From Octopus bimaculoides (taxonomy: Eukaryota), in the NCBI RefSeq assembly GCF_001194135.2, contig NC_068988.1, forward strand, positions 5,603,999 to 5,639,890: a stretch of 35,892 nt of DNA. The letters are read 5' to 3'. Shown here piece after piece: positions 2,332-35,892 of this stretch. Both the position numbers and the translations under genes were made by a program. The notes below the pieces were generated by a model. That model was not told the origin of the DNA. It ran no database searches and saw only the letters and a program-made list of their open reading frames with translations. Every line of letters begins with the position of its first letter. The first letter of the stretch is position 1.

Positions 2332-3225
2332 NNNNNNNNNNNNNNNNNNNNNNNNNNNNNNNNNNNNNNNNNNNNNNNNNNNNNNNNNNNNNNNNNNNNN
2401 NNNNNNNNNNNNNNNNNNNNNNNNNNNNNNNNNNNNNNNNNNNNNNNNNNNNNNNNNNNNNNNNNNNNNNNNNNNNNNNNNNNNNNNNNNNNNNNNNNNN
2501 NNNNNNNNNNNNNNNNNNNNNNNNNNNNNNNNNNNNNNNNNNNNNNNNNNNNNNNNNNNNNNNNNNNNNNNNNNNNNNNNNNNNNNNNNNNNNNNNNNNN
2601 NNNNNNNNNNNNNNNNNNNNNNNNNNNNNNNNNNNNNNNNNNNNNNNNNNNNNNNNNNNNNNNNNNNNNNNNNNNNNNNNNNNNNNNNNNNNNNNNNNNN
2701 NNNNNNNNNNNNNNNNNNNNNNNNNNNNNNNNNNNNNNNNNNNNNNNNNNNNNNNNNNNNNNNNNNNNNNNNNNNNNNNNNNNNNNNNNNNNNNNNNNNN
2801 NNNNNNNNNNNNNNNNNNNNNNNNNNNNNNNNNNNNNNNNNNNNNNNNNNNNNNNNNNNNNNNNNNNNNNNNNNNNNNNNNNNNNNNNNNNNNNNNNNNN
2901 NNNNNNNNNNNNNNNNNNNNNNNNNNNNNNNNNNNNNNNNNNNNNNNNNNNNNNNNNNNNNNNNNNNNNNNNNNNNNNNNNNNNNNNNNNNNNNNNNNNN
3001 NNNNNNNNNNNNNNNNNNNNNNNNNNNNNNNNNNNNNNNNNNNNNNNNNNNNNNNNNNNNNNNNNNNNNNNNNNNNNNNNNNNNNNNNNNNNNNNNNNNN
3101 NNNNNNNNNNNNNNNNNNNNNNNNNNNNNNNNNNNNNNNNNNNNNNNNNNNNNNNNNNNNNNNNNNNNNNNNNNNNNNNNNNNNNNNNNNNNNNNNNNNN
3201 NNNNNNNNNNNNNNNNNNNNNNNNN

Positions 3226-3372: not shown

Positions 3373-3787
3373 TTGAGTGTGCTCATAGACATAATTTTAT
3401 TCATTCATGTGTATGATCCTTTCAATATAAACATCGATGAATACCAAGCAAAACCTATTAAACACACAACTCTAAATAATTTTCTGACGAAAATTGAACA
3501 GCTTTTAATATTTCTTAGGTTTCCTTCTAAAATGCATATCGACGTATGGAGATCGTCTGGATTCAAAAAAACGAAGTCTGCATTGTTTACTATTTCTGTT
3601 GTATTTCATGTTTATTATTGATTTCACTCGTTTGCCATGGTTTATTTTAGCAAAACATACCAGTGAGAATAGTCGGCCTCTGTTGGCCAAAAGTTCTCTT
3701 CTATTCTTGAAAATACTTCCATGCATGCTTACAATAAATACACTCTGGAATCGACATTTTATCGCTCTGCTTCTGCAAAAACTTCGT
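3373..3787 (+). pseudogene. GRL/7TMIC variable first exon B, pseudogenised 5' part
   Basis: VYDPFNINIDEYQAKPIKHTTLNNFLTKIEQLLIFLRFPSKMHIDVWRSSGF then, after a +1 A in the run at 3565-3571, YFMFIIDFTRLPWFILAKHTSENSRPLLAKSSLLFLKILPCMLTINTLWNR. Very close to C/D. The ATG and ~20 N-terminal codons are deleted relative to D; homology breaks at 3787. Confidence 0.9.
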
Positions 3788-5384: not shown

Positions 5385-5640
<256 letters not shown>

Positions 5641-5725: not shown

Positions 5726-6808
5726 ATGGCTTTGCACTCGTTACCAACTGTTCTTACAAATATGGAAACATCTCACGCTGTCGTTGATATATTCAATCCA
5801 TTAAAAATAAATATGGAAGAATACAAATCAAAGCCTATTAAGCTGACGACTCTAAATATCTTTGTGGATAAATTTGAACAGCTTTCAATATTTCTTAGAT
5901 TTCCTTCTAAAGTGAATATCGATGTATGGAAATCGTTTGGATTAAAAAACCGCACACTGTATTGCTTACTACTTCTGTCGTATTTCGTGTTTAGTTTTGA
6001 TTTTATTCGTTTGCCATGGTATATTTTAGCAAAGTACTCCAGTGAGGGGACTGGGCCTCTGTTGGCCAAAAGTTCCCTTCTATTCGTGAAGACACTTCCA
6101 AGTATGCTTGCAATAAATATGCTTTGGAACAGACAGTTTATCATTCAGTTTCTACGAGAATTTCGTAGTTATATTCCAGCAGAGCAAAGTGATAGATATA
6201 TGACTAAATATAATAAAATGGGAATGTTTCAAATCAAATTCCATACATTTTTAGGTATCGTAATGTGTTTTACAGTTCAAATTTTGTTGCCAATTGTTTT
6301 AAAAGAACCGGAATATTTTCTTGATGTGATGTGTTTCCCATTAACACGTAAGAGCGAGTTATTTGAATTTACTTTGATTTTAAATTTTATAATACATTTA
6401 TTAGTTCATCTCCTGACGATGCTAAACAATATAATGTTCTTTATAGCAATATTACTTATGATAAATGAATTTAAATGTTTGTCGGATAAACTTGAAAATG
6501 TCATGCAGAAAATGATCCGGGAACACACAGGGATATTTGTTACACGTAGTCATTGCAGTAAAATCCTATATCAGATTATTAACCAGCATGGAAGACTTTG
6601 CAATTTGCTGAAATTTATGAATGCTGTATTTCAAGGCGGAGGCGCTATTTCCATATTGTCATTCGTTATAATCTGTTGTGTTATACTATATGCAGTAGCA
6701 AATAACTTAGTCACAGGAAATGGCTACATATTGCAAATTGTGTGCGGAGTACTAACAGCACTATCATTTATACTGTACACATATAAAGGACTACAGCTGA
6801 ATTTTAGT
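5726..6808 (+). CDS. GRL/7TMIC chemoreceptor variable first exon C (361 codons, N-term to TM6); predicted to splice to 20836 for a 431-aa protein
   Basis: Open frame with six hydrophobic segments and OR/GR-like motifs (CFPL after TM3, NEFKCL, HGRLCNLLKFMN, IICC, YKGLQL). Ends at a phase-0 AGT|GTAAGT donor (GT at 6809). The splice partner is inferred. Confidence 0.85.
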
Positions 6809-7608
6809 GTAAGTATTCGAATTGTTAATCTTATTCTGCCAACAGTCTTAAATGCAGTGCATTAGTTTGACTTCATCTTTATACGTCATAATCAACAGCT
6901 TTTCCTGAATTGTAAATATGAATTTATTCGCTTAACTATTTGTTTAAAAATAGAGAAGATTGTAGATTTTATGGCAGTAGAAGAAAATGAGCATCGTGAA
7001 AATTAAACTATAGAGAAGAGGGTTAACAGGGTTTCAATTTTCAAGAGGTTTCACTGGAAACGAATCAGAGAATTAGACTTTATACGTAATTTAGAAAAAA
7101 TAGTAACGTTCTGACATTTGTTCAGCTAAAGCAATTTGCTTTAACACAATCACTACAGCGTTGACCATAGAATGCCTTATATTTTTTTTATGATTCTCGT
7201 GTCAGTCACTGAACCAGGGTCATGAAGGCGAACGGTTCTGATGATCAATTATTACTCCAACAAACGGAGCCGTAAACTGGTTTTTTTTCTTTCTTTTCCC
7301 TTAACGCTAATTCACTTGGATTTAAAGAACATATGACCAGTTGTTGAAACGGTGGGAACACGAACAACGGTGTACCCCCTCTCACACACTCACAGAGACA
7401 CAAACGCACATACTCACACACACACACGCAATTAGGCACACACCTACCCATACATACAGACGCACATAAAAGGAGTCACACATATAAATATGCAGCAAAC
7501 ATCCACGCATTTTTTCTGTAGAAAGCAATGGTCGTCTCTATTCTATAAGAAAATTCATTCGCCGAACGGTCTGGGATTCAACTCGAAATCATGCAGTTGC
7601 AAAGCTGA

Positions 7609-8060
7609 GGGCGGTGAGCTGGCAGAAACGTGAGCACATCGGGAAAAATGCTTAGCAGTATTTCGTCAGCCGCTACGTTCTGAGTTCAAATTCCGCCGAG
7701 GTCGACTTTGCTTTCATCTTTTCGGGGTTGATTAAATAAGTACCAGTTACGCACTGGGGTCGATATAATCGACTTAATCCGTTTGTCTGTCCTTGTTTGT
7801 CCTCTCTGTGTATAGCTCCTTGTGGGCAATAAAGAAATTAGAAACGTGAGCACGCCCTAGAATTATAGGGTACATCAAATATTATGCTCAATACTGCAAT
7901 ACTGCAGATATGCTTGTTAGTTGCCTCACTTTAACTAGTTGAGCATGTCCCTTAACGGCTGACGATATGTGCGTCTCTGACAACGAGCAGATGTAGTGGA
8001 GAGGCATCATAGCCATATGTATAGAGGAATTCTTTGCGATTTGATTAATTCCCCTCTGGA
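7609..8060 (+). mobile_element. Nested tRNA-derived SINEs
   Basis: A-box-like ggtgagctggcaga and B-box gagttcaaattcc. Body is near-identical to the 24982-25218 copy. agaaacgtgagcac is duplicated at 7624-7637 and 7840-7853, consistent with insertion into another SINE head. Confidence 0.8.
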
Positions 8061-8596
8061 AATACGCGTGTTTTCTTCATCATCATTAAACAAAGCTTAT
8101 TCAGGGAACTCAAGAAATCTCTTACAAAGCCCCACCTGTTATATTAACAAAGTCGACATCGGTGCTATTTGTTCTTGGAGCGTACTAAATCGAGACATGT
8201 AATGCAAGTTATTTTTCCGATGTCCTAACGATAAAACCAATCCGCTATCATTAGTGTTTCATATAATATCGAGTAGTTACTTGCCTATGTTTGCATATAT
8301 CAGTTAGATAGCACATTATTTAATCATGGCTCTGTCACAGTCAGATAAAATAAATTAGTATGATTATTTATGTAATATTTAGTATCTCAACAATAAACAA
8401 CGTATTAATGAGTACCATGGAAAAGAAAACTGGTTAGTTTACTTACATAGTGGGTGAGGTTTTAGTTTAGTGGAAGAATACTTAATATATATGTAGTATG
8501 GCTTGTGTTCATTGATTTATATATTAATACAGGACCAGATCATTATAACCGCCAGGAGTGCTCATAAAAATAATTTTATACGTACAAGATTATAGA

Positions 8597-9679
8597 ATGG
8601 CTTTGCTCTCTCCACCAACTGTCCTTCCAAGTAAGGCAACATATCACACTATTGTTAACATATATAATCCTCTGGATATAAATACCGACGAATACAAATT
8701 AAATGCTGTTAAAGGCACTACTCTAAATATATTTCTGGAGAAAGTTGAACAGTTTTCAATATTTCTTAGATTTCCTTCTAAAATGAATATCAACATATGG
8801 AAGTCGTCTGGATTAAAAAAACGAACTCTGTATTGTTTACTACTTTTGTTGTATTTCGTGTCTATTGTTGATTTCATACGTTTGCCATGGTTTATTTTAG
8901 CAAAGTACTCCAGTGAGAAGACCGGGCCGCTGTTGGCAAAAAGTCTTCTCCTATTCCTAAAGATATTTCCCAATATGCTTGCAATAAATATAATTTGGAA
9001 TAGACAATTTGTCATTCAGTTTCTACGAGAATTTCGTAGTTATATTCCAGTAAACCAAAGTGATGAATATATGACTAAATATAATAAAATGGGAATGTTT
9101 CAAATCGCACTCAATATTTGTTTAATTCTAGTGTTGTGTGTTACAGTCCACATTATATTGCCAATAGTTTTAAAAGAACCGGAATATTTTCTTGATGTGA
9201 TGGGTTTCCCACTAACACGTAAAAGCGGCTTATTTGAATTTGTTTTGTTAATAAATTTCATGACACAAATATTGGTAAACCTAATAACGATGCCAAGCAA
9301 TGCATTGAACCTTGTGTTATTCTCATATATGACAGATGAGTTTAAATGTTTGTCAGATAAACTTGAAAAAGTCTTGCGGAATATGCACCGGGAAAATAGA
9401 AGAATATTTGTCTTACGCAGTCATTTCAATAAAATTATTTATCAGATTATTTACCAGCATGGAAGACTTTGCGATTTGCTGAAATTTATAAATGCTATAT
9501 CTAAAGGCGGAGGCGGTATTTCAATGTTTACATTTATTGTTATTTGTTGTGTCATAGCGTATGAAGTAGCAAATAACTTAGTGACCGGAAATGGTTACAT
9601 ATTGCAAATTATCAGCGGAATATTAACAGCACTAGCATGCCTAGGTGTAATATTCAAAGGACTACAGTTAAATTTCAGT
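8597..9679 (+). CDS. GRL/7TMIC chemoreceptor variable first exon D (361 codons, N-term to TM6); predicted 431-aa isoform
   Basis: Close paralog of C with the same length from the homologous ATG (MALLSPPTV...). Same motifs and the same phase-0 AGT|GTAAGT donor (GT at 9680). The ORF-track start at 8558 (GTG) lies in 5' flank homologous to the noncoding flank of B. Confidence 0.85.
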
Positions 9680-11609
9680 GTAAGTATTCATGTTCTAATT
9701 CTTACCTCTTCAGCAATCTTAAATACAATTTCTAATCCGATATAATTATTTCATGAATCTTTATCGAAATATTTCGCCTGAAATGTGAAAATGAATTTAT
9801 TCCCTTAATGTTCTTGTTTAGAATAGGTGAAACACATAGATTTTATGTATAAAGGCGCGTATTTTATATACATTTTCAAACAGAGAAAAAGAGGAAAAAA
9901 AGCTAGCGGAGTGATGTGAATAGATAGACAGACAGACAGACAGACGACTTCTAATAGGCTAATATTTTGTTTTACAGTGAATCAAATGTCTTAGCTGACT
10001 GTGATTGTGCTAGGAAATAACTCCTCCGACCGATTAAGGTGAAAATTCAGTTTCTACAAAATTCATTTTGCCCTTAGGAAAACGAATCCGTCAACCAATT
10101 TCTGTCGTTTTCAGGAACTTAATGAGACGGGTACACTTCCCGTTACACTTCAACAAAACATTTTAATTTTTCCACTATAACTATAGAGTTCTGTTACACT
10201 GAAGACATCGAATGACAAAAATTAATAAAGAATTTTTCCCAAATAAACAAGCTAAATTTTTGATTCTTGTATGAACAAAATACTGCGGAAAGGGCCATAT
10301 ATATANNNNNNNNNNNNNNNNNNNNNNNNNNNNNNNNNNNNNNNNNNNNNNNNNNNNNNNNNNNNNNNNNNNNNNNNNNNNNNNNNNNNNNNNNNNNNNN
10401 NNNNNNNNNNNNNNNNNNNNNNNNNNNNNNNNNNNNNNNNNNNNNNNNNNNNNNNNNNNNNNNNNNNNNNNNNNNNNNNNNNNNNNNNNNNNNNNNNNNN
10501 NNNNNNNNNNNNNNNNNNNNNNNNNNNNNNNNNNNNNNNNNNNNNNNNNNNNNNNNNNNNNNNNNNNNNNNNNNNNNNNNNNNNNNNNNNNNNNNNNNNN
10601 NNNNNNNNNNNNNNNNNNNNNNNNNNNNNNNNNNNNNNNNNNNNNNNNNNNNNNNNNNNNNNNNNNNNNNNNNNNNNNNNNNNNNNNNNNNNNNNNNNNN
10701 NNNNNNNNNNNNNNNNNNNNNNNNNNNNNNNNNNNNNNNNNNNNNNNNNNNNNNNNNNNNNNNNNNNNNNNNNNNNNNNNNNNNNNNNNNNNNNNNNNNN
10801 NNNNNNNNNNNNNNNNNNNNNNNNNNNNNNNNNNNNNNNNNNNNNNNNNNNNNNNNNNNNNNNNNNNNNNNNNNNNNNNNNNNNNNNNNNNNNNNNNNNN
10901 NNNNNNNNNNNNNNNNNNNNNNNNNNNNNNNNNNNNNNNNNNNNNNNNNNNNNNNNNNNNNNNNNNNNNNNNNNNNNNNNNNNNNNNNNNNNNNNNNNNN
11001 NNNNNNNNNNNNNNNNNNNNNNNNNNNNNNNNNNNNNNNNNNNNNNNNNNNNNNNNNNNNNNNNNNNNNNNNNNNNNNNNNNNNNNNNNNNNNNNNNNNN
11101 NNNNNNNNNNNNNNNNNNNNNNNNNNNNNNNNNNNNNNNNNNNNNNNNNNNNNNNNNNNNNNNNNNNNNNNNNNNNNNNNNNNNNNNNNNNNNNNNNNNN
11201 NNNNNNNNNNNNNNNNNNNNNNNNNNNNNNNNNNNNNNNNNNNNNNNNNNNNNNNNNNNNNNNNNNNNNNNNNNNNNNTATATATATAAGAAAGAAAAAT
11301 ATGTAAAAACGCACATGAGGTTTGTATAATAAAAATTAATGCTAATATTAATATCATAATGAAACAAAGAGTTGTATTACAACATTATATAATACACTAA
11401 ACTGGGTGATGCGGTTTCGCGTCTAACGCTTATCAAACTTCCATAGTCTCAGTTTCAACTCATGGGGGCGCCATTATTATTGACAATAACTTTTGACTGC
11501 AAAAATTATTGGCATAAATTTTGATTATACAAACTTCTTGTGCATTTTTACATATTTTTCTGTCTTGAATATCTACACTCTCGTGTAAACAAGATTTGAC
11601 ACCTTTATG

Positions 11610-11647
<38 letters not shown>

Positions 11648-12114
11648 NNNNNNNNNNNNNNNNNNNNNNNNNNNNNNNNNNNNNNNNNNNNNNNNNNNNN
11701 NNNNNNNNNNNNNNNNNNNNNNNNNNNNNNNNNNNNNNNNNNNNNNNNNNNNNNNNNNNNNNNNNNNNNNNNNNNNNNNNNNNNNNNNNNNNNNNNNNNN
11801 NNNNNNNNNNNNNNNNNNNNNNNNNNNNNNNNNNNNNNNNNNNNNNNNNNNNNNNNNNNNNNNNNNNNNNNNNNNNNNNNNNNNNNNNNNNNNNNNNNNN
11901 NNNNNNNNNNNNNNNNNNNNNNNNNNNNNNNNNNNNNNNNNNNNNNNNNNNNNNNNNNNNNNNNNNNNNNNNNNNNNNNNNNNNNNNNNNNNNNNNNNNN
12001 NNNNNNNNNNNNNNNNNNNNNNNNNNNNNNNNNNNNNNNNNNNNNNNNNNNNNNNNNNNNNNNNNNNNNNNNNNNNNNNNNNNNNNNNNNNNNNNNNNNN
12101 NNNNNNNNNNNNNN

Positions 12115-12183
<69 letters not shown>

Positions 12184-12703
12184 ATTGTTAAACAGGACGT
12201 CATACATTAAGGCAAGGCAAACATCTCCAGTCATATACAATATTATTACCGGAAGAAACTCAACATCTTATAGCTGTTTCTGGGATATCCCCGAGCATGG
12301 AATATTCCGTCATCAGAGACAAATTGGGTGTGGGGGTGAGATATGGAAAATGAGAATGGTATATATCAATAAGATGAAAACATAGAGGAAGGGAGTGAAA
12401 GAATATGGAGATGGAAAGGGAAGAGAAAAAAGAAACATAAAAGTTCATAGTTCAACTTTCTGAAATTATAGAACCCAAAGCATGAGTTCTTAGGTGCAAT
12501 CATGCGTATATCTATGTGGGTTAAAGTCCTGATATAACAGACATTCCAAGAAAAAGACGCGAACATATCAACCTAGCGTACCTAGTTCTATATCCGTCAA
12601 ATGTAAATAAAGTAAATAATCTAGTGTACCTAATCGTTTAGATCACCTGTGAACCAAACCCCCATACTTTGATATATACATACATGTATACATTTATCAG
12701 TGT

Positions 12704-12751
<48 letters not shown>

Positions 12752-12832
12752 GTGTATATATTTGTATGTATATATATGTGTGCATGTACATATGTGTATG
12801 CGTATGTATATATATATGTGTGTGTGTGTGCA

Positions 12833-12998
12833 TACCACGGGCTTCTTTCAGTTTCCCTCTACTACGTCCACTCACAGTGCTTTGGCTGACCGTAGGGGAC
12901 AGAGTAAAAGTCACTTGATCAAGGTACCAGACAGTGCGACTGAACACCAAACCATGGGGTTGGGAAGCAAGCTCTTTACCACACAGCCGTCCCTCCGC
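12833..12998 (-). mobile_element. tRNA-derived SINE (same family as 23226 and 26614), minus strand
   Basis: Reverse complement reads ggctgtgtggtaaagagcttgcttcccaacc...gggaaactgaaagaagcccg followed by a TA/TG microsatellite, matching the + strand copies. Confidence 0.85.
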
Positions 12999-25730: not shown

Positions 25731-26269
25731 TACAAGGTAAACTTACGTCGTAACACATGTCGGATGCAGTGCCACACCAATATAATCTACCGCAAATATT
25801 GCATAATATTTCACATGAAACCAAATCCCGGCAATGGTGTTAGAAGTGTAGCGGCACCGAGACAATGCTAACTAATTACAAAGTCATTCTAATTCCATTC
25901 TTCATTATGATAATTGCTATAAATCCACATATACATACAGATATATTTATAAATTTCGAAGTGCTATGCGGGAATATATTCTTAAGAAATTACTTTACGA
26001 AAATATTATTGAAAAACGAAGTGTTATTTGAAGTTGAGAGTAAACTAATGCAACGAAGACAGCTTAGTTGTAGAATAGTACTAATAATAATCAGATGCGG
26101 ATCTTTGAAAACTCCTAATTATGTGTTTAGAAATTAGTCCATATGCCATAGACAAACTGCAATATCATTTCTCTTATTCCAGTGCTGGTGTCTGCTGACA
26201 ACTCTGCTAATGCTTCTCACGTGTTTTACCTTATTTAAAATTTGATCTCTATCTCTCACCTCCCCTCTT

Positions 26270-26302
<33 letters not shown>

Positions 26303-26573
26303 TCAGCTTTACGCTTTCTAAATTACTTTCATAATTTCATAACAAACACTTTCAGAATGTCCGATTGCTCAAATAGCCAATTTTCTGAGTCCTTAATATA
26401 AATAATCATGTTGTAAAGCTCATAACACAGAAAAACAGGTATGGCGGTAAGGTTAAACTAGTCGCTTTTGAATTACGTACTTTCGAATTCAAACACTCTG
26501 TCCTGTGAGTGTGTTTGGTAGCTTGAAACTATATAGAACCCCTCCGTATATACATACATACATACATACATAC

Positions 26574-26613
<40 letters not shown>

Positions 26614-26614
<1 letters not shown>

Positions 26615-27040
26615 CGCAGGAGTGGCTGTGTGGTAAGTAGCTTGCTTACCAACCACATGGTTCCGGGTGCAGTCCCACTGCGTGACACTTTGAGCAAGTG
26701 ACTTCTACTATAGCCTCGGGTCGACCAAAACCTTTTGAGTGGTTTTGGTAGAGGGAAACTGAAAGAAGCCTGTATATGTTTGTGTGTGTGCGTACTTGCG
26801 TGCGTATGTGTATGTTTGTATGTATGTATGTATGTATGTATGTACGTATGTATGTCATTGACTGTCTACCGTTGAACACACGGTATTGGCTTACTACGTA
26901 CTCATAAATTTTTGCGGTTAGTCAAAGGCCCAGCAATAAGATCAGTACCCGGCTTGGAAAATTAGTATTACAATTGAGTTGTTCGTTTAAAACCTTCGTG
27001 GTGTCTCTCCTGAAAGGCAACAGTTCCGTAACAAATAAAA
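26614..27040 (+). mobile_element. tRNA-derived SINE (head, microsatellite, decayed tail)
   Basis: gcgcaggagtggctgtgtggtaagtagcttgcttaccaaccacatggttccgggtgcagtccc...gggaaactgaaagaagcc. Confidence 0.85.
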
Positions 27041-27228
27041 GATATGATGTATAAAAGTTATTACTACAAAAGCGTCATGTTCTATATATAAATGTTTAAA
27101 ATAAACGTGAATAACCTAACTTGTATAAAAGCATTATACAAATAGTGTCACATTTATATAAATGCAATATATAGACAATTATTAGTCATACAGATCGTTA
27201 ATACACGGTTATATATTATATATTGCAG

Positions 27229-27282
27229 CTCATTGGAAGTATCATCACCTATTCCATAGTGGCGTATCAGACAAGGAGTTAG
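27229..27282 (+). CDS. Shared terminal exon (54 nt with stop): LIGSIITYSIVAYQTRS* (TM7b)
   Basis: Acceptor atattgc-AG|CTC. Carries the TYxxxxxQ signature of the GR/GRL family; same length as the minus-strand paralog 34828-34881. Possible ATTAAA poly(A) signal ~27333. Confidence 0.92.
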   Translation, partial: LIGSIITYSIVAYQTRS

Positions 27283-27748
27283 AAGTGGCAGACGTTATAC
27301 GAGAGAGTCTAATTTCTCAAATTGAAAAGAAGAATTAAATGGATTTGTAAATTGATTATGTGTATGCATGCAAGTATTCACATATTATGTATGTTACTGT
27401 ACCTGTATGTATTCACGTGAGTGTGTATATAAGTATTTATGTAGATGTGCCTCTCTCTCTCTCTCTATATATATATTGTGTGTGTGTGTGTGAGAGAGAG
27501 AGCGAGAGATAGACAGAGAAGAGACATAAATCAAGAATTTTGGCAAATTAAAATACATACACATATCTCTCTCCCCCCTCTCTCTCCATATAGATGGATT
27601 CTCTGTCCTATAATGTAGCACAGATAACGAGAGCCAAACATGGTTAAAAATTGATAGAACACAAAATAAGCATGGATTATAAGAAGTAACCAAAATTTCT
27701 TGACAGATATTTTGACACATTCTGTTCATTTCAGCTACATGTGTGTGA

Positions 27749-27792
<44 letters not shown>

Positions 27793-27832
27793 GGGGTCAT
27801 TTTTCAATATGTGCTTAAACCTTTTAGAAGTC

Positions 27833-27875
<43 letters not shown>

Positions 27876-27886
27876 TGTATATATGT

Positions 27887-27931
<45 letters not shown>

Positions 27932-30851
27932 NNNNNNNNNNNNNNNNNNNNNNNNNNNNNNNNNNNNNNNNNNNNNNNNNNNNNNNNNNNNNNNNNNNNN
28001 NNNNNNNNNNNNNNNNNNNNNNNNNNNNNNNNNNNNNNNNNNNNNNNNNNNNNNNNNNNNNNNNNNNNNNNNNNNNNNNNNNNNNNNNNNNNNNNNNNNN
28101 NNNNNNNNNNNNNNNNNNNNNNNNNNNNNNNNNNNNNNATATAGTTAAATGTTAATTTCTGAAAATAATATAAAAGTAATATATAAACAACAGAACCGAA
28201 TCAGCAGCCTAGTGTAATCAGAAGGATCAACAATTTAGTCTTCCTAGTCATATATTCCGGTTTCAATCTCGGGCCTGATTTTGCACCTTTCCATATAATT
28301 AAGGGTTCTGATGATATTTAAAAAAATAAAATTGTGTTGATGATTTGGTTGGTTATAATCAGTATAATAATGACTGAATATTGAATAAATATTTCATTAT
28401 CTGTATGAATGAAGGTCATAAATATATTTTTATTGTAACATTTTTGGGAATAATTCCCCGTTGCCTTCATTAAGATCAAGTGATTGTGCATTCATAATTT
28501 TGTTGTCTGTCCAAAGATGGAATTCATACACGGAACTGTTCAATTTTCTAGAAAAATAGCAACAGCAAGATATTGCAATCAAACCTCCGGTTTTTAATAA
28601 ATACTAACTACAAGAAACTAACACGCAAATATGGAAAATTTGCAACAAAAACCGTTAAAATTTGGATATTGTCTTCTCTTTAATGAAACATATATACATT
28701 CGTTTTTTGTCGGTATCTGAATATGTGTGTTTGTATGTGAAGTGGGAGCGGGTAAGCGTGTAAATATTTACGGAAGTAAATATCTACAGACAGCCTAGAG
28801 GGGAGATCCTAAAGCAGATAGGTACTGTTATATTTAATCACTATCTGCTATCCCTCACGGTACCATGAATGCTACGAACGAATGGGATTGCCTTTCCATC
28901 GTGAAATATCCTTGAAAGGTGGTAAATGTACTCGTGGCGAGGCACATATTTCCTGAAACAGTCAAATCACTGAAAAGCTGGCTTATTTAATTTGTCTGCA
29001 ATACTGTCGACTAACGAGGAAAATGGCTATCCATATGAGTGTTGGTTTATGAAATGAATCACTAGCTATTGTAAACATTCAGGTATTACGAATTTATGAA
29101 ATATTAACTGTAATCTAATTACAAGTACTGCAACGTAATATTTTGCTGCATTATAATATTATATCTTTATAAATGATGTTGCATAAATAAACACTTATCC
29201 AACCAGTCTGCATTTGTTTTTGTATTATTTTCATTTGATTCGATTTCATTTGTTTTTTTCATTATGTTTTGTTTTTAGAAACGGTTAATGACTGTGAAGT
29301 GTCAAAAGTACAAAATTTCACAAATTTTAAGATTGTTGTAACGCGTAAGAAAAAGAATGTTTTGTTTATTTTATGTATTCTCTTCCTTGGTCTATGATTT
29401 GAATGAAGATGTTTAATCGTGCAAGGTTGGTATAGAAAAGATTATCTCACAGTCACTCACCATCAGGGCACAGCACAAGCTAAAATTTCAAATACGAATC
29501 TATTTCCCCCTTCCAATTGTATATATATAAAAAAATAATCGGGAATTTTGAGTAAATACTTTGTGGTAATAAATATGAAATCGATGATTGAAGTTAAGCT
29601 ACGCAAAACAAATAAGAGTCAAAAGAAACATAGTTATGAAATAACTATCGGGATTTTAAAAGATGGAAACTCCTCAGCAGGGAGTGAAATATGTTCGCCT
29701 AAAATATTCAGATAGGATTGTGTGTGCGTGTGCATAAATACACATATATATATACAGGGTTGACTGAAAGTCAACCGACAGTAAATCAAAAATGCGATAA
29801 ATTCTATCTGTTATTCTGCATTAACTCGAATGGCAAAATGTATCACTCGAGAAGGACTTCAGTTTGAACTGTTTTCATGATGTTTCATATTTAGATTCTT
29901 TTATTAAATTCATTCAGTTGTTGAACATAAATAAATTTCTGAATTAAACGGTTTTGATTTGCTGTCAGGTGACTTTTGACCAACCCTGTACATATCTATA
30001 TGCAAGGGAGAAAATATTGAAGTATTATGCCATCTGTGATTCGGAAAAAGTAATGACCATTCGTAAAAACATGACGAATGTAAAGTGTAGTTCTTATGAC
30101 TGAGTTGTGATGGAATAGCTTGGAGGGTATCGAAAAGAGGGAGAGGATTAATCATGTAGCATGATAATGGTACATGATAAATTCTTTCATAAATACCCCA
30201 AAATTAGAATATGAGTGTGCTTATAGTAAATGATGGAAGACTATAATTGTTACTATGCAACTAGGATATTTTAAACATCTACATTGCTAGAAATAAGAGT
30301 GAGCTAAAATGCTCTAATGTTGTAGTCAAAGTACATAATTATTTACGTATATATAGACGAGGATTTAATCGTCTGATAACGCCTTTCGAGAATTTCGTAT
30401 AAGAAATGTAAGTGTTCATAATACTTTTGTCGCATGTGTGTAATATATTTCTCTCATTGTATCCAATGAAGCAAATGCAACAAGATCAGTCGCTTGTTAG
30501 TTGCAGGGAAACTATCAATGCTGTCCAATAAAAACTAATTAGTTATTTGAGTATCAGTAAATAAAGATTAATCATGCCTTTAAACAAATGAGGTTTGCCA
30601 CATGATAACGATGACGACAGTAAAAGGCAACGCCTAGTTTCGTTCACTGCTGAAACAAACAACACTTATTTCATTTCTATACATCATTTCTTTAGTGGAT
30701 TCTACTGGATAACCTTGTAGAACTGAATCAGTCATTCACTACCAGCTGCGTTCATTGTAACACAAAAAAGGCATAATTAAAACCAACTAAAATCAGCAAG
30801 TGGCAATGCACAATACATAAATACATGTATGTTTGTATGTATGTATATATT

Positions 30852-30933
30852 TTTCATCAATTTTCATACACTTTAAAGGAAATTTCATATACTAAAGGAA
30901 TTTTCATACGCATTAAAGAAAGTTTCATGTACT
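30852..30933. repeat. Imperfect ~20-nt tandem repeat upstream of exon G
   Basis: tttcatacactttaaaggaaa / tttcatatactaaaggaat / tttcatacgcattaaagaaag / tttcatgtact. Confidence 0.7.
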
Positions 30934-30998
30934 GACGTGATTTAAAATTTGTTCGGATCTTTAAACAATATTGTGATACGTTGTAATTATTTTTTAAA

Positions 30999-31997
30999 AT
31001 GACGTCTTCGACTTCAGATGGAAACAAAGGATTTACAAAAGAATGTAGCCTTTATGATTTTATTCATTCCTTAAAACCACCAGATTACTTCCCTCTACGC
31101 CGCATGAAAATGACACGAAATATTTGGAATTCCCTTGGATTATTCGATCGCATTTCCTATTTATCTTATTGCTTACTCTATGCTATGATATTGGCTGATG
31201 CTCTGCGTTATTTTCTGTTCATTTGGTCAATATTTAAAGAAACAGAAGTGGGATTATTAATGGTATCAACCTTTATTTTATTATCAAAATTGTCTCGTAT
31301 AATATGCTTACTTTATTTCCTGATGCAAAAGTATGACCAGTTTGAGAAATCAACTTGCTTTACTGAGTATAGAATACCATCAGATCGACGGAAACATTTC
31401 GCTAACATATGGTATAAACGAAAGCGTATTGTTTTCTTTGCTATTTTAATGGATTACATTACACAATTTGTTTACGTCGTAATTTTTCCAGTTTGCTTTA
31501 GATATATACGTTTCCTAGAGATCTACTCGTTCCCAGCGTCAGACTCTGGCAACTTTTTTCTACCAATTATAATAACATCTCATATGCTAAAGTTAGCTAT
31601 TAGTTTAATGCTTGATAACGATAACTTAGTCTCCGCTTTCCTTATAATATTCGTGAAAGAAGAGTTCGATAAACTTACCGAAGACTTTCGACAAAATATG
31701 CTCGATATAAATCATGGAGAATCCATAGATAAGTGCAAAGTTAAAAGTCATCTGATAGCCGAAGCTTCGAAAAAACATAGAACACTTTGTAAATTGCTGG
31801 ACTTATGCAATGATAAATTCCAAATCGTGTTAGCAGTAGTTATATTCTTTGTCCCAAGCGGCATTTTTTGTGTGATATATGGAACTCTGAATGATATATT
31901 AATTATCGAAGAGATCATTTTTATGGTATGTTTCTTAATTGGAAGCGCCTATGCGATGCTTATGTATTTTGGGGAAGGCATAACACTGTATAGTAAG
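30999..31997 (+). CDS. Divergent GRL/7TMIC first exon G (333 codons, N-term to TM6); C-terminal exons not found on + strand
   Basis: Open frame with FP...IWNSLGLFDR, DALR, YSFP, EEFDKL, HRTLCKLLDLCN and YFGEGITLYSK. Phase-0 donor AAG|GTAAGT (GT at 31998). The ORF-track extension to 32195 is read-through into a (TG)n microsatellite. Confidence 0.85.
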
Positions 31998-32069
31998 GTA
32001 AGTATACGTATGTGTATTGATTACTTTGTGAAATTCACCAGAATCACATTCAACTATTACCTATATATA

Positions 32070-32164
<95 letters not shown>

Positions 32165-33658
32165 TTGTGTGTATATAGAGAGAATGAGAGGATAGATAGA
32201 TTGATTGATTGATTGATTGAATCATTCATTTATTCATTCATTCATCACTATAACGGTTGCTCTATTTACGTTGGCTGCTCGCGTGTGGGCAGCAAGAGTG
32301 ATGCTTTCGCGTTCGTTCCACAAGGAAAAACAAAAAACATTGTGTACAAGGAGGTTTTATACGATTATTTCGCTTCGTAGTTTTATAACTTTTTCAATTC
32401 TTTTTTAATTTTTGCCTTTTTGTCAGTACTTTCTAAGTAGGTGTAGGTTAATATTCATTGCAGTGCATTTGACACTCTCAAACATCAGCTGTAAAAAGGC
32501 TGATTCTCGCGGCGTTACAAAGCTTCATTACAAATCAGACCCTGCTCAAAAATCAGCTCTTGTTCCTCACCAACCCCCATTCGCCAGGCATCGGAGGACC
32601 ATGGAAACGTTACTATTTCACTTCCGTACGACTCTCAAACAGTCAACAATGCTTTTATGACAACATTTACATTCTTAGGCGGTTCCCTGCAATTACTTCA
32701 CACTTCGCCTACACCTGGCCTCCGCTCAGCTCTATTTCCCTCCCTTCGTCAGCACAGCAGCTTCATCTTCTACATCCAACGGACATGAAACATCTCCCCC
32801 CCCCCTTCCATCTCCTCTCTCAACATTACAGTTTACATCAGCGGCAACACGATCCCAATATACAATTTGAAAACCAAGCAACATATTTTATACAACAACA
32901 AATAACGACGACCAATGAAACAAATGGATAAAAATAATTACAAAAGTAACTATCTCTTACACGCCATTACAATTTACATCAAATAACAACACTTAAAAAG
33001 TCGATACAACTAAATACATACATCCTCTCTCTCACCATTATATTTTACACCATTACATTTTACATCAAATACAAAATATTCAAAAGCAACAGGTCATTTT
33101 ACACAACATCTCCATGACAGAGGTGTTCTGATTCATCTATTCATCACCACTACAGTCTTGCCAGTCTGACATGTTGAGTAGATGCTATTGTTGTACATTT
33201 TCAAACTTACCCGTATTTACTTACCCATGAAAAAATCCCCCTCTTTCCTCCATAGGGCCTCTATTCTGTTTTCGCAGAGCATGAAGTTGTGTAACAGNNN
33301 NNNNNNNNNNNNNNNNNNNNNNNNNNNNNNNNNNNNNNNNNNNNNNNNNNNNNNNNNNNNNNNNNNNNNNNNNNNNNNNNNNNNNNNNNNNNNNNNNNNN
33401 NNNNNNNNNNNNNNNNNNNNNNNNNNNNNNNNNNNNNNNNNNNNNNNNNNNNNNNNNNNNNNNNNNNNNNNNNNNNNNNNNNNNNNNNNNNNNNNNNNNN
33501 NNNNNNNNNNNNNNNNNNNNNNNNNNNNNNNNNNNNNNNNNNNNNNNNNNNNNNNNNNNNNNNNNNNNNNNNNNNNNNNNNNNNNNNNNNNNNNNNNNNN
33601 NNNNNNNNNNNNNNNNNNNNNNNNNNNNNNNNNNNNNNNNNNNNNNNNNNNNNNNNNN

Positions 33659-33699
<41 letters not shown>

Positions 33700-34827
33700 C
33701 ACATGCTGAGCTTTCACAGATTTACCCGAGAAGCCACACTAACTGAACTAGAAACCACACATTTACGAAGCGAACTTCTTAGCAACTATGTAACTTTTCT
33801 CCAAAACACGCAATACAAATTTATGCACAACCAAATGCTGAGATAAAAATGAATACCGAACCGAAAGTTTAGTATGTTTCATCGATTTGCAGGCTCCTCT
33901 TCAATAGTTCACAATTATATTCTTTCTCTATTTATTTTACTTCATCTGCTGCAAGAGAAAATACAGCAGACTTTCACAAAGGATCATGTAAATTTTTGCC
34001 GACCACAGGAACACTATCAAACCGACTCTGTTTTACTATGTTTCCATTTTACGTCCTTATGTTTCACCCCTCTTCTTTAATTCCATCGTCCCACTTATAT
34101 TCATCTGTTTGGCAGATATCTGTTCGCATCGAACCAAATAAAGTTTCCGTACTGATTATTATAACGAAGTGTTTATGCTCTTGTAATATTCATCGATCCG
34201 GCCGTAGTGGAAAAGCTTTCTCTGATCAAACACACATGAAATTGTTCGAAATATCACTGTGTCATGTGTCGCATTTATTATGGATATCTTTTCTTCCTTT
34301 TAGATATCATTCTCCATTGTGATGCACAGGCATATTTTTCAGTAAAAGAAAATTTAAACGCAACTGGTTTCATAATGATATTTAATGTTTAGAAAATATA
34401 TCACAATAATGAAAAATCTAACATTGAACACTTTCAGTAATGTATTATGCTATTTATTTATGGAAATGTGAGTTACAAACAAAGTGTGCAGATGAGAGAA
34501 TAAGAAAAATAGAAAAGAGAGAAAAACATTTTGACAAAATATTAGTTATGGTAAGATATCAGTTAAAAGATAGCAGACAGTTGTAAGTTAGTAAGGCGAA
34601 AATCAACGAGCAAATGATAGGAAAGAGAATAGAATCATCGCGGGTTTTAAATGGTAGGGTGACCCGGTACGCACTGCAATGTCACGTCCATCTTTACGCT
34701 CAAAGAAAAATTTGATCTTGTGTAGTTTGTACAGCAGAGTCTTGGTCTGAATGCATTTAATGGTAATGCAATGCAGTTAAATCCGATATCATATTGAATT
34801 TACTATAATAAAGAAGGGAGACCATTA

Positions 34828-34881
34828 TTACTCTTTTGTTTGAATCACCACCAGTATGTAAGTAATAAAACTTCCCATCAT
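34828..34881 (-). CDS. Terminal exon of a second GRL tail: MMGSFITYILVVIQTKE*
   Basis: Strong polypyrimidine acceptor on - strand (ccttcctttctctcttttctccttttc-AG|ATG), TYxxxxxQ motif, TAA stop; 54 nt like 27229-27282. Confidence 0.92.
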   Translation of the reverse strand: MMGSFITYILVVIQTKE

Positions 34882-35021
34882 CTGAAAAGGAGAAAAGAGA
34901 GAAAGGAAGGAATTGTTATTTTCAGAGAATTAATATATATATATATATATATCGTCAAATTTAATAAATTTTATACATATTAATATATATATATCGTCAA
35001 GTTTTATACATTTTATAAATT

Positions 35022-35070
<49 letters not shown>

Positions 35071-35197
35071 TTAAATTTTATAAACTCGTCAACTTAGCAT
35101 ATAAGACCCGAGGTGATATTATGAAATATTATCATGAATAAAAGAGCGCTTTTTTATAGAATTAAACGCAGCAATTATTAATCGCCGTGACATTTAC

Positions 35198-35287
35198 CGT
35201 AAGCGTTGACGAGGGAGTTATTACAAAGCAGCCACCAACATCAATTCCATAAGATTTAGTCGTTAGACGATTTAGGAAAACTAATAC
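35198..35287 (-). CDS. 90-nt phase 0-0 GRL exon: VLVFLNRLTTKSYGIDVGGCFVITPSSTLT
   Basis: Acceptor tctctttttctgtattac-AG|GTA and donor ACG|GTAAAT. Paralogous to 23834-23923. Confidence 0.93.
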
Positions 35288-35402
35288 CTGTAATACAGAA
35301 AAAGAGAGATAACACAAGTGGAGATTGTGCAGCAAGAGACGTTTAATAACTTTCTCATACATCAGATTGAGATATCAGTGGAGACATTGTTGCTGGTATT
35401 AC

Positions 35403-35468
35403 CTGGGGAAACTGTTCCCGATTTGCTTGTCCTCTTATAAATATTTCTACAAAACGGAAAACTTTGAA
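35403..35468 (-). CDS. Candidate 66-nt phase 0-0 exon: FKVFRFVEIFIRGQANREQFPQ
   Basis: Acceptor ttattctttgtgcat-AG and donor CAG|GTAATA. Size and phase fit the exon equivalent to 20836-20904, but sequence similarity is weak. Confidence 0.4.
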
Positions 35469-35892
35469 CTATGCACAAAGAATAATTTCAAGAAAGAATT
35501 ACATCTTGGTGGAATAGACTTCAGCCATGATTAGACGCATAGATAAGAATTGCATAGAAAATTGTAGAGGACGACATTTGCAGCAAGCAAATTCTGCGTA
35601 CTTCTGCAGAATAACCCACTAAAACTGCATATATACATACATAAATGCACACATACATACAGAAATACATACATACATACATACATACATACATACATAC
35701 ATACATACATACATGCATACATACATACATACACATATATATATGTATAGAGTGTTAGGTGTGATAACAGAATTGAATATTGAGAAAAAAAGTCGTCAGA
35801 ATTTTAGAAAAAATCTTTTTATTTCTTTATTATTATTAGCACTTTCATTCCTCTCTAGAACTTGTCAAATACAATTTGGTGAATGTACAAAC

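Follow-up and report, generated by a model that had tools for sequence, protein, structure and literature searches.

On the forward (+) strand of a 35,892-nt stretch of the Octopus bimaculoides genome (the window; C8:5603999-5639890, C8 being contig NC_068988.1), we found the 3′ half of what is very probably a single complex gustatory receptor-like (GRL) locus of the Gr39a/Gr28b type, the orthologue of Octopus sinensis LOC118764605. A row of large alternative first exons precedes one short three-exon 3′ end, the constant tail. This reading is carried by what the analysis showed, namely membership of the protein family by sequence and fold, how the exons are laid out, their one tail, the orthology, and the alternative isoforms annotated in O. 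sinensis. The original prediction, a model's interpretation of the sequence without database searches, had taken the + elements for a tandem gene cluster; that organization was not upheld, the elements being better described as alternative first exons of one locus with a single three-exon 3′ end. The window has 34% G+C and ten gaps of N. Its elements were mapped from stop-to-stop open reading frames (ORFs) and tblastn, and the window and its flanks were joined without conflicts into a stitched region of 86.5 kb (C8:5563337-5649890) containing 13.4 kb of N (15.5%) across 24 gaps. The genome searched comprised 2.34 Gb in 145,327 contigs. Coordinates introduced by C8 refer to the contig, and all others to the window unless another sequence is named.

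The + tail comprises three phase-0 exons of 69, 90 and 54 nt (20836-20904, 23834-23923 and 27229-27282), referred to as constant exons 2, 3 and 4. Constant exon 2 (AHQLADHIYAMPLHDLSHEAIVK; hidden Markov model (HMM) E=1.2e-10), which codes from the end of transmembrane helix 6 (TM6) through a loop into the beginning of TM7a, is preceded by ...CTTTTAG, bounded by AG and GT, and in phase 0 at both ends. Constant exon 3 (LSFFLHRLTSEQIGISIGGCFVINPASVLT; E=2.7e-16), also in phase 0 on both sides, encodes TM7a and the loop ahead of TM7b, and constant exon 4 (LIGSIITYSIVAYQTRS followed by a TAG stop; E=9.5e-9) encodes TM7b including the TYxxxxxQ motif, with an ATTAAA signal at 27334. The motifs H..LC.LL, FLxRL..GGxFxI and TYxxxxxQ were found at the tail positions originally claimed for them. 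The two-exon tail proposed along with them was incomplete, having missed the 69-nt exon, which we traced from ~23 extra residues located in full-length relatives between exon 1 and the 90-nt exon. None of the N gaps falls inside a coding exon of the window; they lie in introns or between first exons, with two of them (21979-22720 and 23385-23394) in the intron separating constant exons 2 and 3, and another (24086-24815) in the intron separating constant exons 3 and 4. The joining of the exons over these intron gaps was backed by the O. sinensis LOC118764605 proteins, in which these three exons recur in unchanged order.

On its + strand, and only there, the window holds seven first-exon elements, of which four are intact and three are broken by stops or frameshifts. 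The tblastn map and the splice sites bore out the earlier count of seven first exons and two tails, as well as the division into four intact exons and three pseudo-exons, two of which precede position 5726, where the predicted cluster was said to begin. The intact elements are ORFs of 333-361 codons whose phase-0 end falls directly before a GTAAGTAT or GTAAATAT donor. They are located at 5726-6808 (361 codons, from the ATG to ...LQLNFS; GTAAGTAT donor in phase 0), 8597-9679 (361 codons; GTAAGTAT donor; 72% identical to the exon at 5726, with a ratio of nonsynonymous to synonymous divergence, dN/dS, of 0.47), 19318-20388 (357 codons; GTAAATAT donor; nearest to the constant exons) and, in a divergent form considered further below, 30999-31997 (333 codons; consensus GTAAGTAT donor). 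The pseudo-exon at 1525-1967 (residues ~3-145) contains in-frame stops and a frameshift near 1850, its remainder being either lost or concealed by the gap at 2332-3225; the one at 3403-3766 (residues ~20-139) is truncated and frameshifted at ~3567; and the one at 16056-16957 (residues 1 to ~297) is interrupted by at least five in-frame stops, is frameshifted near 16640 and no longer has its 3′ part. Paralogous first exons matched each other at E=1e-57 to 1e-158, far beyond chance. Two antisense ORFs of 123 aa on the minus strand (5773-6144 and 8644-9015) run across the 5′ portions of two first exons; they resemble each other solely because they mirror paralogous sense exons, and they are probably not genes.

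Spliced to the constant exons, the first exons at 19318, 5726 and 8597 gave four-exon products scoring 40.6, 42.6 and 30.7 bits, respectively, on Pfam 7tm_7 (PF08395; curated cut-off 26.6 bits), with matches covering profile positions 33-365 of 370. This was the one significant family in the Pfam scans, which returned no match to the Cys-loop (Neur_chan) family. First exons alone matched nothing in Pfam or among PDB sequences, and a profile of the three-exon models found nothing relevant among PDB sequences. A three-exon model without the 69-nt exon reached only 27.3 bits on 7tm_7, its tail being disordered, and was replaced by the four-exon model. AlphaFold2, run on a 431-residue isoform with a 35-sequence alignment, produced a predicted structure with a local confidence score (pLDDT) of 81.4 and a global score (pTM) of 0.80, in which helices occupy residues 73-103, 109-148, 156-191, 213-265, 270-326, 331-370, 379-394 and 409-430. 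This pattern is of the Orco type: TM4-TM6 are long, and TM7 is split into TM7a and TM7b. In a Foldseek comparison with the PDB, the best 21 matches were all insect odorant receptors (ORs), Orco or gustatory receptors (GRs) (probability 1.00, TM-score 0.48-0.71), and after these insect chains the values fell sharply to a probability of 0.18 and a TM-score of 0.15. The same structural check had been proposed with the prediction, and it returned the Orco/OR/GR fold rather than one foreign to the seven-transmembrane ion channel (7TMIC) superfamily. Full-length superposition of the model on Orco, ORs and GRs would imply an intracellular N-terminus, the reverse of GPCR topology.

When 1.8 billion representative proteins were searched exhaustively by HMM, only 57 relatives were recovered, mostly first-exon ORFs left unspliced in read assemblies. 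All relatives with a name were molluscan (Octopus sinensis, O. vulgaris, Lottia, Argopecten and Saccostrea), the two octopuses being nearest, followed by Lottia, scallop and oyster, which agrees with the cephalopod source first suggested by the repeats and not with an arthropod one. The sequence differences from O. sinensis indicate an octopod distinct from that species and from O. vulgaris. The Lottia relative, V4C6X0, bears the UniRef name 'Gustatory receptor', and the sequences of other relatives align with the tail-exon boundaries of the three phase-0 introns. Benton et al. characterize GRLs by a TM7 motif together with 3′ introns that are conserved; the motif is TYhhhhhQF in insects, and its partial conservation is accepted in GRLs (PMC7746228). 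Both features are present here, in the form of three phase-0 3′ introns and a TM7 motif, TYSIVAYQT in the + tail and, in a second, minus-strand tail, TYILVVIQT, with T, Y and Q retained. Taken together, the spliced proteins, which lie above the 7tm_7 cut-off, belong by sequence and predicted fold to the GR/GRL family of the 7TMIC superfamily, as had been proposed.

Upstream of the + tail, 15 first-exon elements spread over ~60 kb (C8:5564837-5624386), nine of them intact, five broken and one a gap-adjacent fragment. When all six frames of the stitched region were scanned with one HMM per tail exon, each HMM gave exactly two significant matches, one in the + tail and one in the minus tail (E 1e-9 to 1e-16), and every other match had E>0.05. 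The 1.8-kb interval 6809-8596, which separates the first exons at 5726 and 8597 and contains no N, held no tail exon by HMM, by eye or by regular expression, and four more intervals between upstream first exons, N-free or nearly so, were likewise without one. In all ten intact first exons (nine of the locus and that at 30999), the last codon occupies one shared position in the alignment and is followed, in phase 0, by a GTAAGTAT-like donor (GTAAGTAT, GTAAATAT or GTAAGAAT); the donors upstream of the window lie at C8:5567863, 5571597, 5579210, 5587270, 5593913 and 5599405. The intact first exons of the locus are splice-compatible with constant exon 2, with phase 0 on both sides of the junction. 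A tandem array of separate GRL genes, each with its own 3′ exons mostly hidden in gaps, would be a common arrangement for such gene families, and the 13.4 kb of N leave some room for it. We nevertheless consider such an array extremely improbable and largely refuted already. The intervals free or nearly free of N carry no tail exon, the known tails span 2.6-6.4 kb and exceed all gaps but one, and only ~9 tails were found in the whole genome. O. sinensis argues in the same direction, since gap-free DNA of that species contains two first exons and one tail, and the orthologue of our locus is annotated there over >105 kb with two first exons on one tail.

The orthologue was reached by a search with the tail, which led to two isoforms of O. 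sinensis LOC118764605, X1 (421 aa) and X2 (403 aa). Their first exons differ, being related only as members of one family. The two isoforms share an identical stretch of 70 residues at the end, which differs from the + tail of the window at 2 of 70 residues. The first exon of X1 is 68% identical to a middle element of the octopus locus described here (C8:5586218), and that of X2 is 77% identical to the most distal one (C8:5564900-5565901). The distal element contains stops in this genome, and its O. sinensis counterpart serves as the X2 first exon, a case of lineage-specific exon death.

For the adjacent O. sinensis gene, LOC118764606, 47.8 kb of DNA without N was fetched, and the following positions refer to it. 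The gene model splices a first exon (10001-11002) past a second intact first exon (ORF 23165-24295) to the sole tail (27093-27161, ~30169-30255 and 37719-37784), whose exon boundaries align residue for residue with those of the window tail. The second first exon, with its ORF intact, has GCAAGTAT at the donor (24278-24285) instead of GTAAGTAT, which is either a rare GC-AG donor or one recently disabled. Long introns of this gene (12901-17897 and 32312-35510) are filled with reverse transcriptase-like and other retroelement ORFs. Its counterpart in this genome likewise has two first exons and one tail (C8:5535510-5554168). Across the loci compared, first exons are 68-84% identical between this genome and O. 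sinensis. Set against the 2 differences in 70 residues of the LOC118764605 tail, the 68-77% identity of orthologous first exons shows that the putative sensing part evolves much faster than the part that is predicted to form the pore and anchor. The O. sinensis proteins of the family are listed as 'uncharacterized' in NCBI.

Several points weigh against the locus as we describe it. The LOC118764605 isoforms are Gnomon pipeline models whose RNA support was not inspectable, and the use of each first exon in this genome rests on inference rather than on transcripts. A search for a shared upstream motif found no 8-10-mer common to at least six of ten first-exon upstream regions. With 15.5% of the stitched region being N, a compact tail could hide in some of the intervals. 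The first exon at 30999-31997 sits past the + tail, ahead of the 3′ end of the minus unit. The final residue of the TM7 motif is T and not the F of insects (QT vs QF), as also in the scallop relative, the Lottia protein having QF. Finally, little functional evidence links non-arthropod GRLs to chemoreception, and data on the function and expression of GRLs outside insects are very sparse (PMC7746228).

The failure to find a shared promoter motif among the ten upstream regions and the death of 5 of the 15 elements would suit a locus in which only the proximal first exon, 19318-20388, makes protein and the others are unspliced duplication relics that happen to be still open. We regard this as unlikely. 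Nine ORFs of 345-362 codons have stayed open, and paralogous first exons show dN/dS of 0.37-0.61 at synonymous divergence (dS) of 0.35-1.4; selection therefore maintains the first-exon reading frames. In addition, the consensus donor is kept at the same codon in all of them, and the X1 and X2 isoforms of O. sinensis use the middle and the most distal first exons, not the proximal one. The birth-and-death evolution proposed in the original prediction was confirmed as a process, with nine intact and five broken elements and one exon that is dead here and intact in O. sinensis; its units are exons, however, and not genes. As a separate observation, a TATA-like block (ATATAAATATT...TTTGCATTCAGG) lies ~75-95 nt before the ATGs at C8:5578158, 5586218 and 5570563. 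It is conserved only within this three-exon subfamily, the other first exons being without it, and may represent a promoter element.

In the locus that we favor, one intact first exon at a time would be joined to the three constant exons, yielding about nine receptor isoforms. According to the predicted structure, exon 1 would supply residues 1-361, including the N-terminus, TM1-TM5 and most of TM6, and the constant exons would supply residues 362-431, completing TM6 and adding TM7a and the pore-lining TM7b. In insect OR and GR structures, the ligand pocket is built by the region that matches exon 1, and the region of the TM6 end, TM7a and TM7b in Orco and GRs forms the cytoplasmic anchor and lines the pore. 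Many sensing modules are likely to be combined with one pore-and-assembly module, and isoforms of one locus would have a common assembly interface. We infer that every intact first exon is used, each from a separate promoter of its own as at Drosophila Gr28b and Gr39a, and that the products form tetrameric ligand-gated cation channels acting in chemosensation. First exons are gained, diverge and die, making the exon the level at which birth and death operate.

The locus could be organized exactly in this way and still have a developmental, internal-sensing or other role instead of environmental chemoreception, which we regard as a substantial possibility, albeit the less probable one. Other roles have been suggested for some non-arthropod GRLs, a group for which, as noted above, functional data are few. 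The reviews of octopus chemotactile sensing consulted here name only the chemotactile receptors (CRs) derived from nicotinic acetylcholine receptors (nAChRs) (PMC11526382, PMC12635824), and octopus genomes carry hardly any annotation of the family, possibly as a result of low expression. In favor of environmental chemoreception are the large, fast-diverging, lineage-specific arrays typical of environmental receptors, the 68-77% identity of first exons between the two octopuses as opposed to 2 differences in 70 tail residues, and the turnover of pseudo-exons in the locus; each of these is circumstantial rather than direct evidence.

The first exon at 30999 is a misfit in the + locus. The contig that carries it (28139-33297) has a gap on either side, and the tail-exon HMMs detected no + strand tail within reach downstream of it in the stitched region. 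Its closest relatives, at C8:5816856 and 5823111, are 190 kb off, beside a + tail at 5826768. The exon may be misplaced in the scaffold, may have been stranded by a rearrangement, or may be spliced over a very long range. We also considered that the gap-flanked contig 33659-35892 might be inverted, with the minus tail serving this first exon; this idea was rejected because exon 2 and the first exons of the minus unit follow beyond the window, on the minus strand and in the right order. The two tails of the window had originally been treated as equivalents. The minus tail (34828-35287) is instead the 3′ end of a neighboring convergent unit of the same kind, with constant exon 3 at 35198-35287 (VLVFLNRLTTKSYGIDVGGCFVITPSSTLT) and constant exon 4 at 34828-34881 (MMGSFITYILVVIQTKE followed by a TAA stop) inside the window. 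Its exon 2 lies outside, at C8:5641331-5641399, and its first exons are at C8:5642688 (a frameshifted pseudo-exon), 5651576 (a pseudo-exon) and 5661767.

Genome-wide searches with divergent first exons and both tails identified at least 70 first-exon elements and only ~9 tails, confirming that the family is expanded. At least six variable-exon units are located at C8:5.51-5.83 Mb: two small + units, the + unit with 15 first-exon elements (C8:5563337-5631280), the minus unit that reaches into the window with its 3′ end, a further minus unit with at least 24 first exons (C8:5683591-5807005, ~123 kb, mostly open frames; tail at 5673902-5676666) and a + unit at C8:5816856-5826875. The unit with at least 24 first exons has one downstream minus tail, and no other variable-exon array of the family in the genome is as large. 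A second cluster lies at C8:9.85-9.95 Mb. At its edge, two full tails face each other ~3 kb apart (C8:9852174-9855322 on the minus strand and C8:9858630-9860888 on the + strand), an arrangement that could stem from an inverted duplication, from convergent units that interleave or from faulty assembly. Searched in six frames with Pfam 7tm_7, the genome gave a single match of 28.7 bits at C8:91192043-91192636 (minus strand), in an open frame of 400 aa. This locus is a more conventional GRL gene distant from the clusters, and because it was the sole match, the search was unusable for counting the family. In the window itself, (CA)n/(TG)n, (TA)n and (GATA)n microsatellites flank nearly all N gaps (for example at 5430-5600, 11600-12190, 18120-18380, 24030-24900 and 27750-27930) and probably caused the assembly breaks.

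The ~9 loci could give roughly 60-70 proteins, and the size of the repertoire would be wrong if each first exon were counted as a gene or each locus as one receptor. It is conceivable, although we find it doubtful, that the 60-70 isoforms in about nine arrays are subject to a protocadherin-like choice of one promoter in each chemosensory cell. If true, such a choice would amount to a one-receptor-per-cell code on a shared pore module and would provide a second ionotropic chemoreceptor system alongside the nAChR-derived CRs. The organization also offers a practical handle, since removal of the constant exons would abolish every isoform of a locus together.

Octopus contact chemosensation is now explained by CRs, which are nAChR-derived (Allard 2023, Kang 2023, van Giesen 2020, as cited in PMC11526382), and the GRL repertoire adds a second candidate set, almost unannotated in octopus. 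Like the CRs, octopus GRLs are lineage-expanded candidate ionotropic receptors. In contrast to the pentameric Cys-loop CRs, they belong to the 7TMIC superfamily, with an unrelated fold and family; and whereas CRs have functional proof, octopus GRLs are known from sequence and predicted fold. The closest structural likeness is to the solved insect proteins Orco (6c70), MhOR5 (7lic), AaegOR10 (8v00), AgamOR28 (8v3c), DmGr43a (8jm9) and BmGr9 (8vc1), with which the model has the same fold over ~400 columns, although sequence identity is merely 10-15%. Outside arthropods, GRLs have been reported in Lottia, Capitella, Nematostella and others (Robertson 2015, Saina 2015, Eyun 2017, as cited in PMC7746228) and are thus known in Mollusca (PMC7746228). 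In common with the octopus GRLs, these proteins have seven TM helices, the TM7 motif and, towards the 3′ end, small exons separated by conserved introns. Homology is detectable for Lottia V4C6X0 and for scallop and oyster proteins, whose tails have the same exon structure. The octopus repertoire looks large, its ~70 first-exon elements being packed into ~9 loci, and no description of cephalopod GRLs or of their gene organization was found in the literature searched.

In gene design, the locus resembles the clustered protocadherins and UGT1A, in which many large variable first exons are likewise followed far downstream by a few shared constant exons. The protein families are unrelated, and the protocadherin and UGT1A systems are defined by promoter choice and a conserved promoter element, whereas the upstream motif search in the octopus was negative. 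The nearest counterpart is Drosophila Gr39a, together with Gr28b and Gr23a, which belongs to the same 7tm_7 family, combines large alternative first exons with three small constant exons, and shows exon death differing between species. The octopus locus differs from it in its host, a cephalopod mollusc, and in its larger size, with nine intact, five dead and one partial first exon over ~60 kb and introns of up to tens of kb; the minus unit at C8:5683591-5807005 goes further still, with at least 24 first exons. Two other differences are the octopus TM7 motif, which ends in QT rather than QF, and the alternative use of first exons, which for this locus is seen only through the annotation of the sister species. 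The match to Gr39a and Gr28b raises the question of whether such a design goes back to the ancestor of protostome GR/GRL genes or evolved repeatedly. Notable here are the scale and the cephalopod host, the family and the design being already known from flies.

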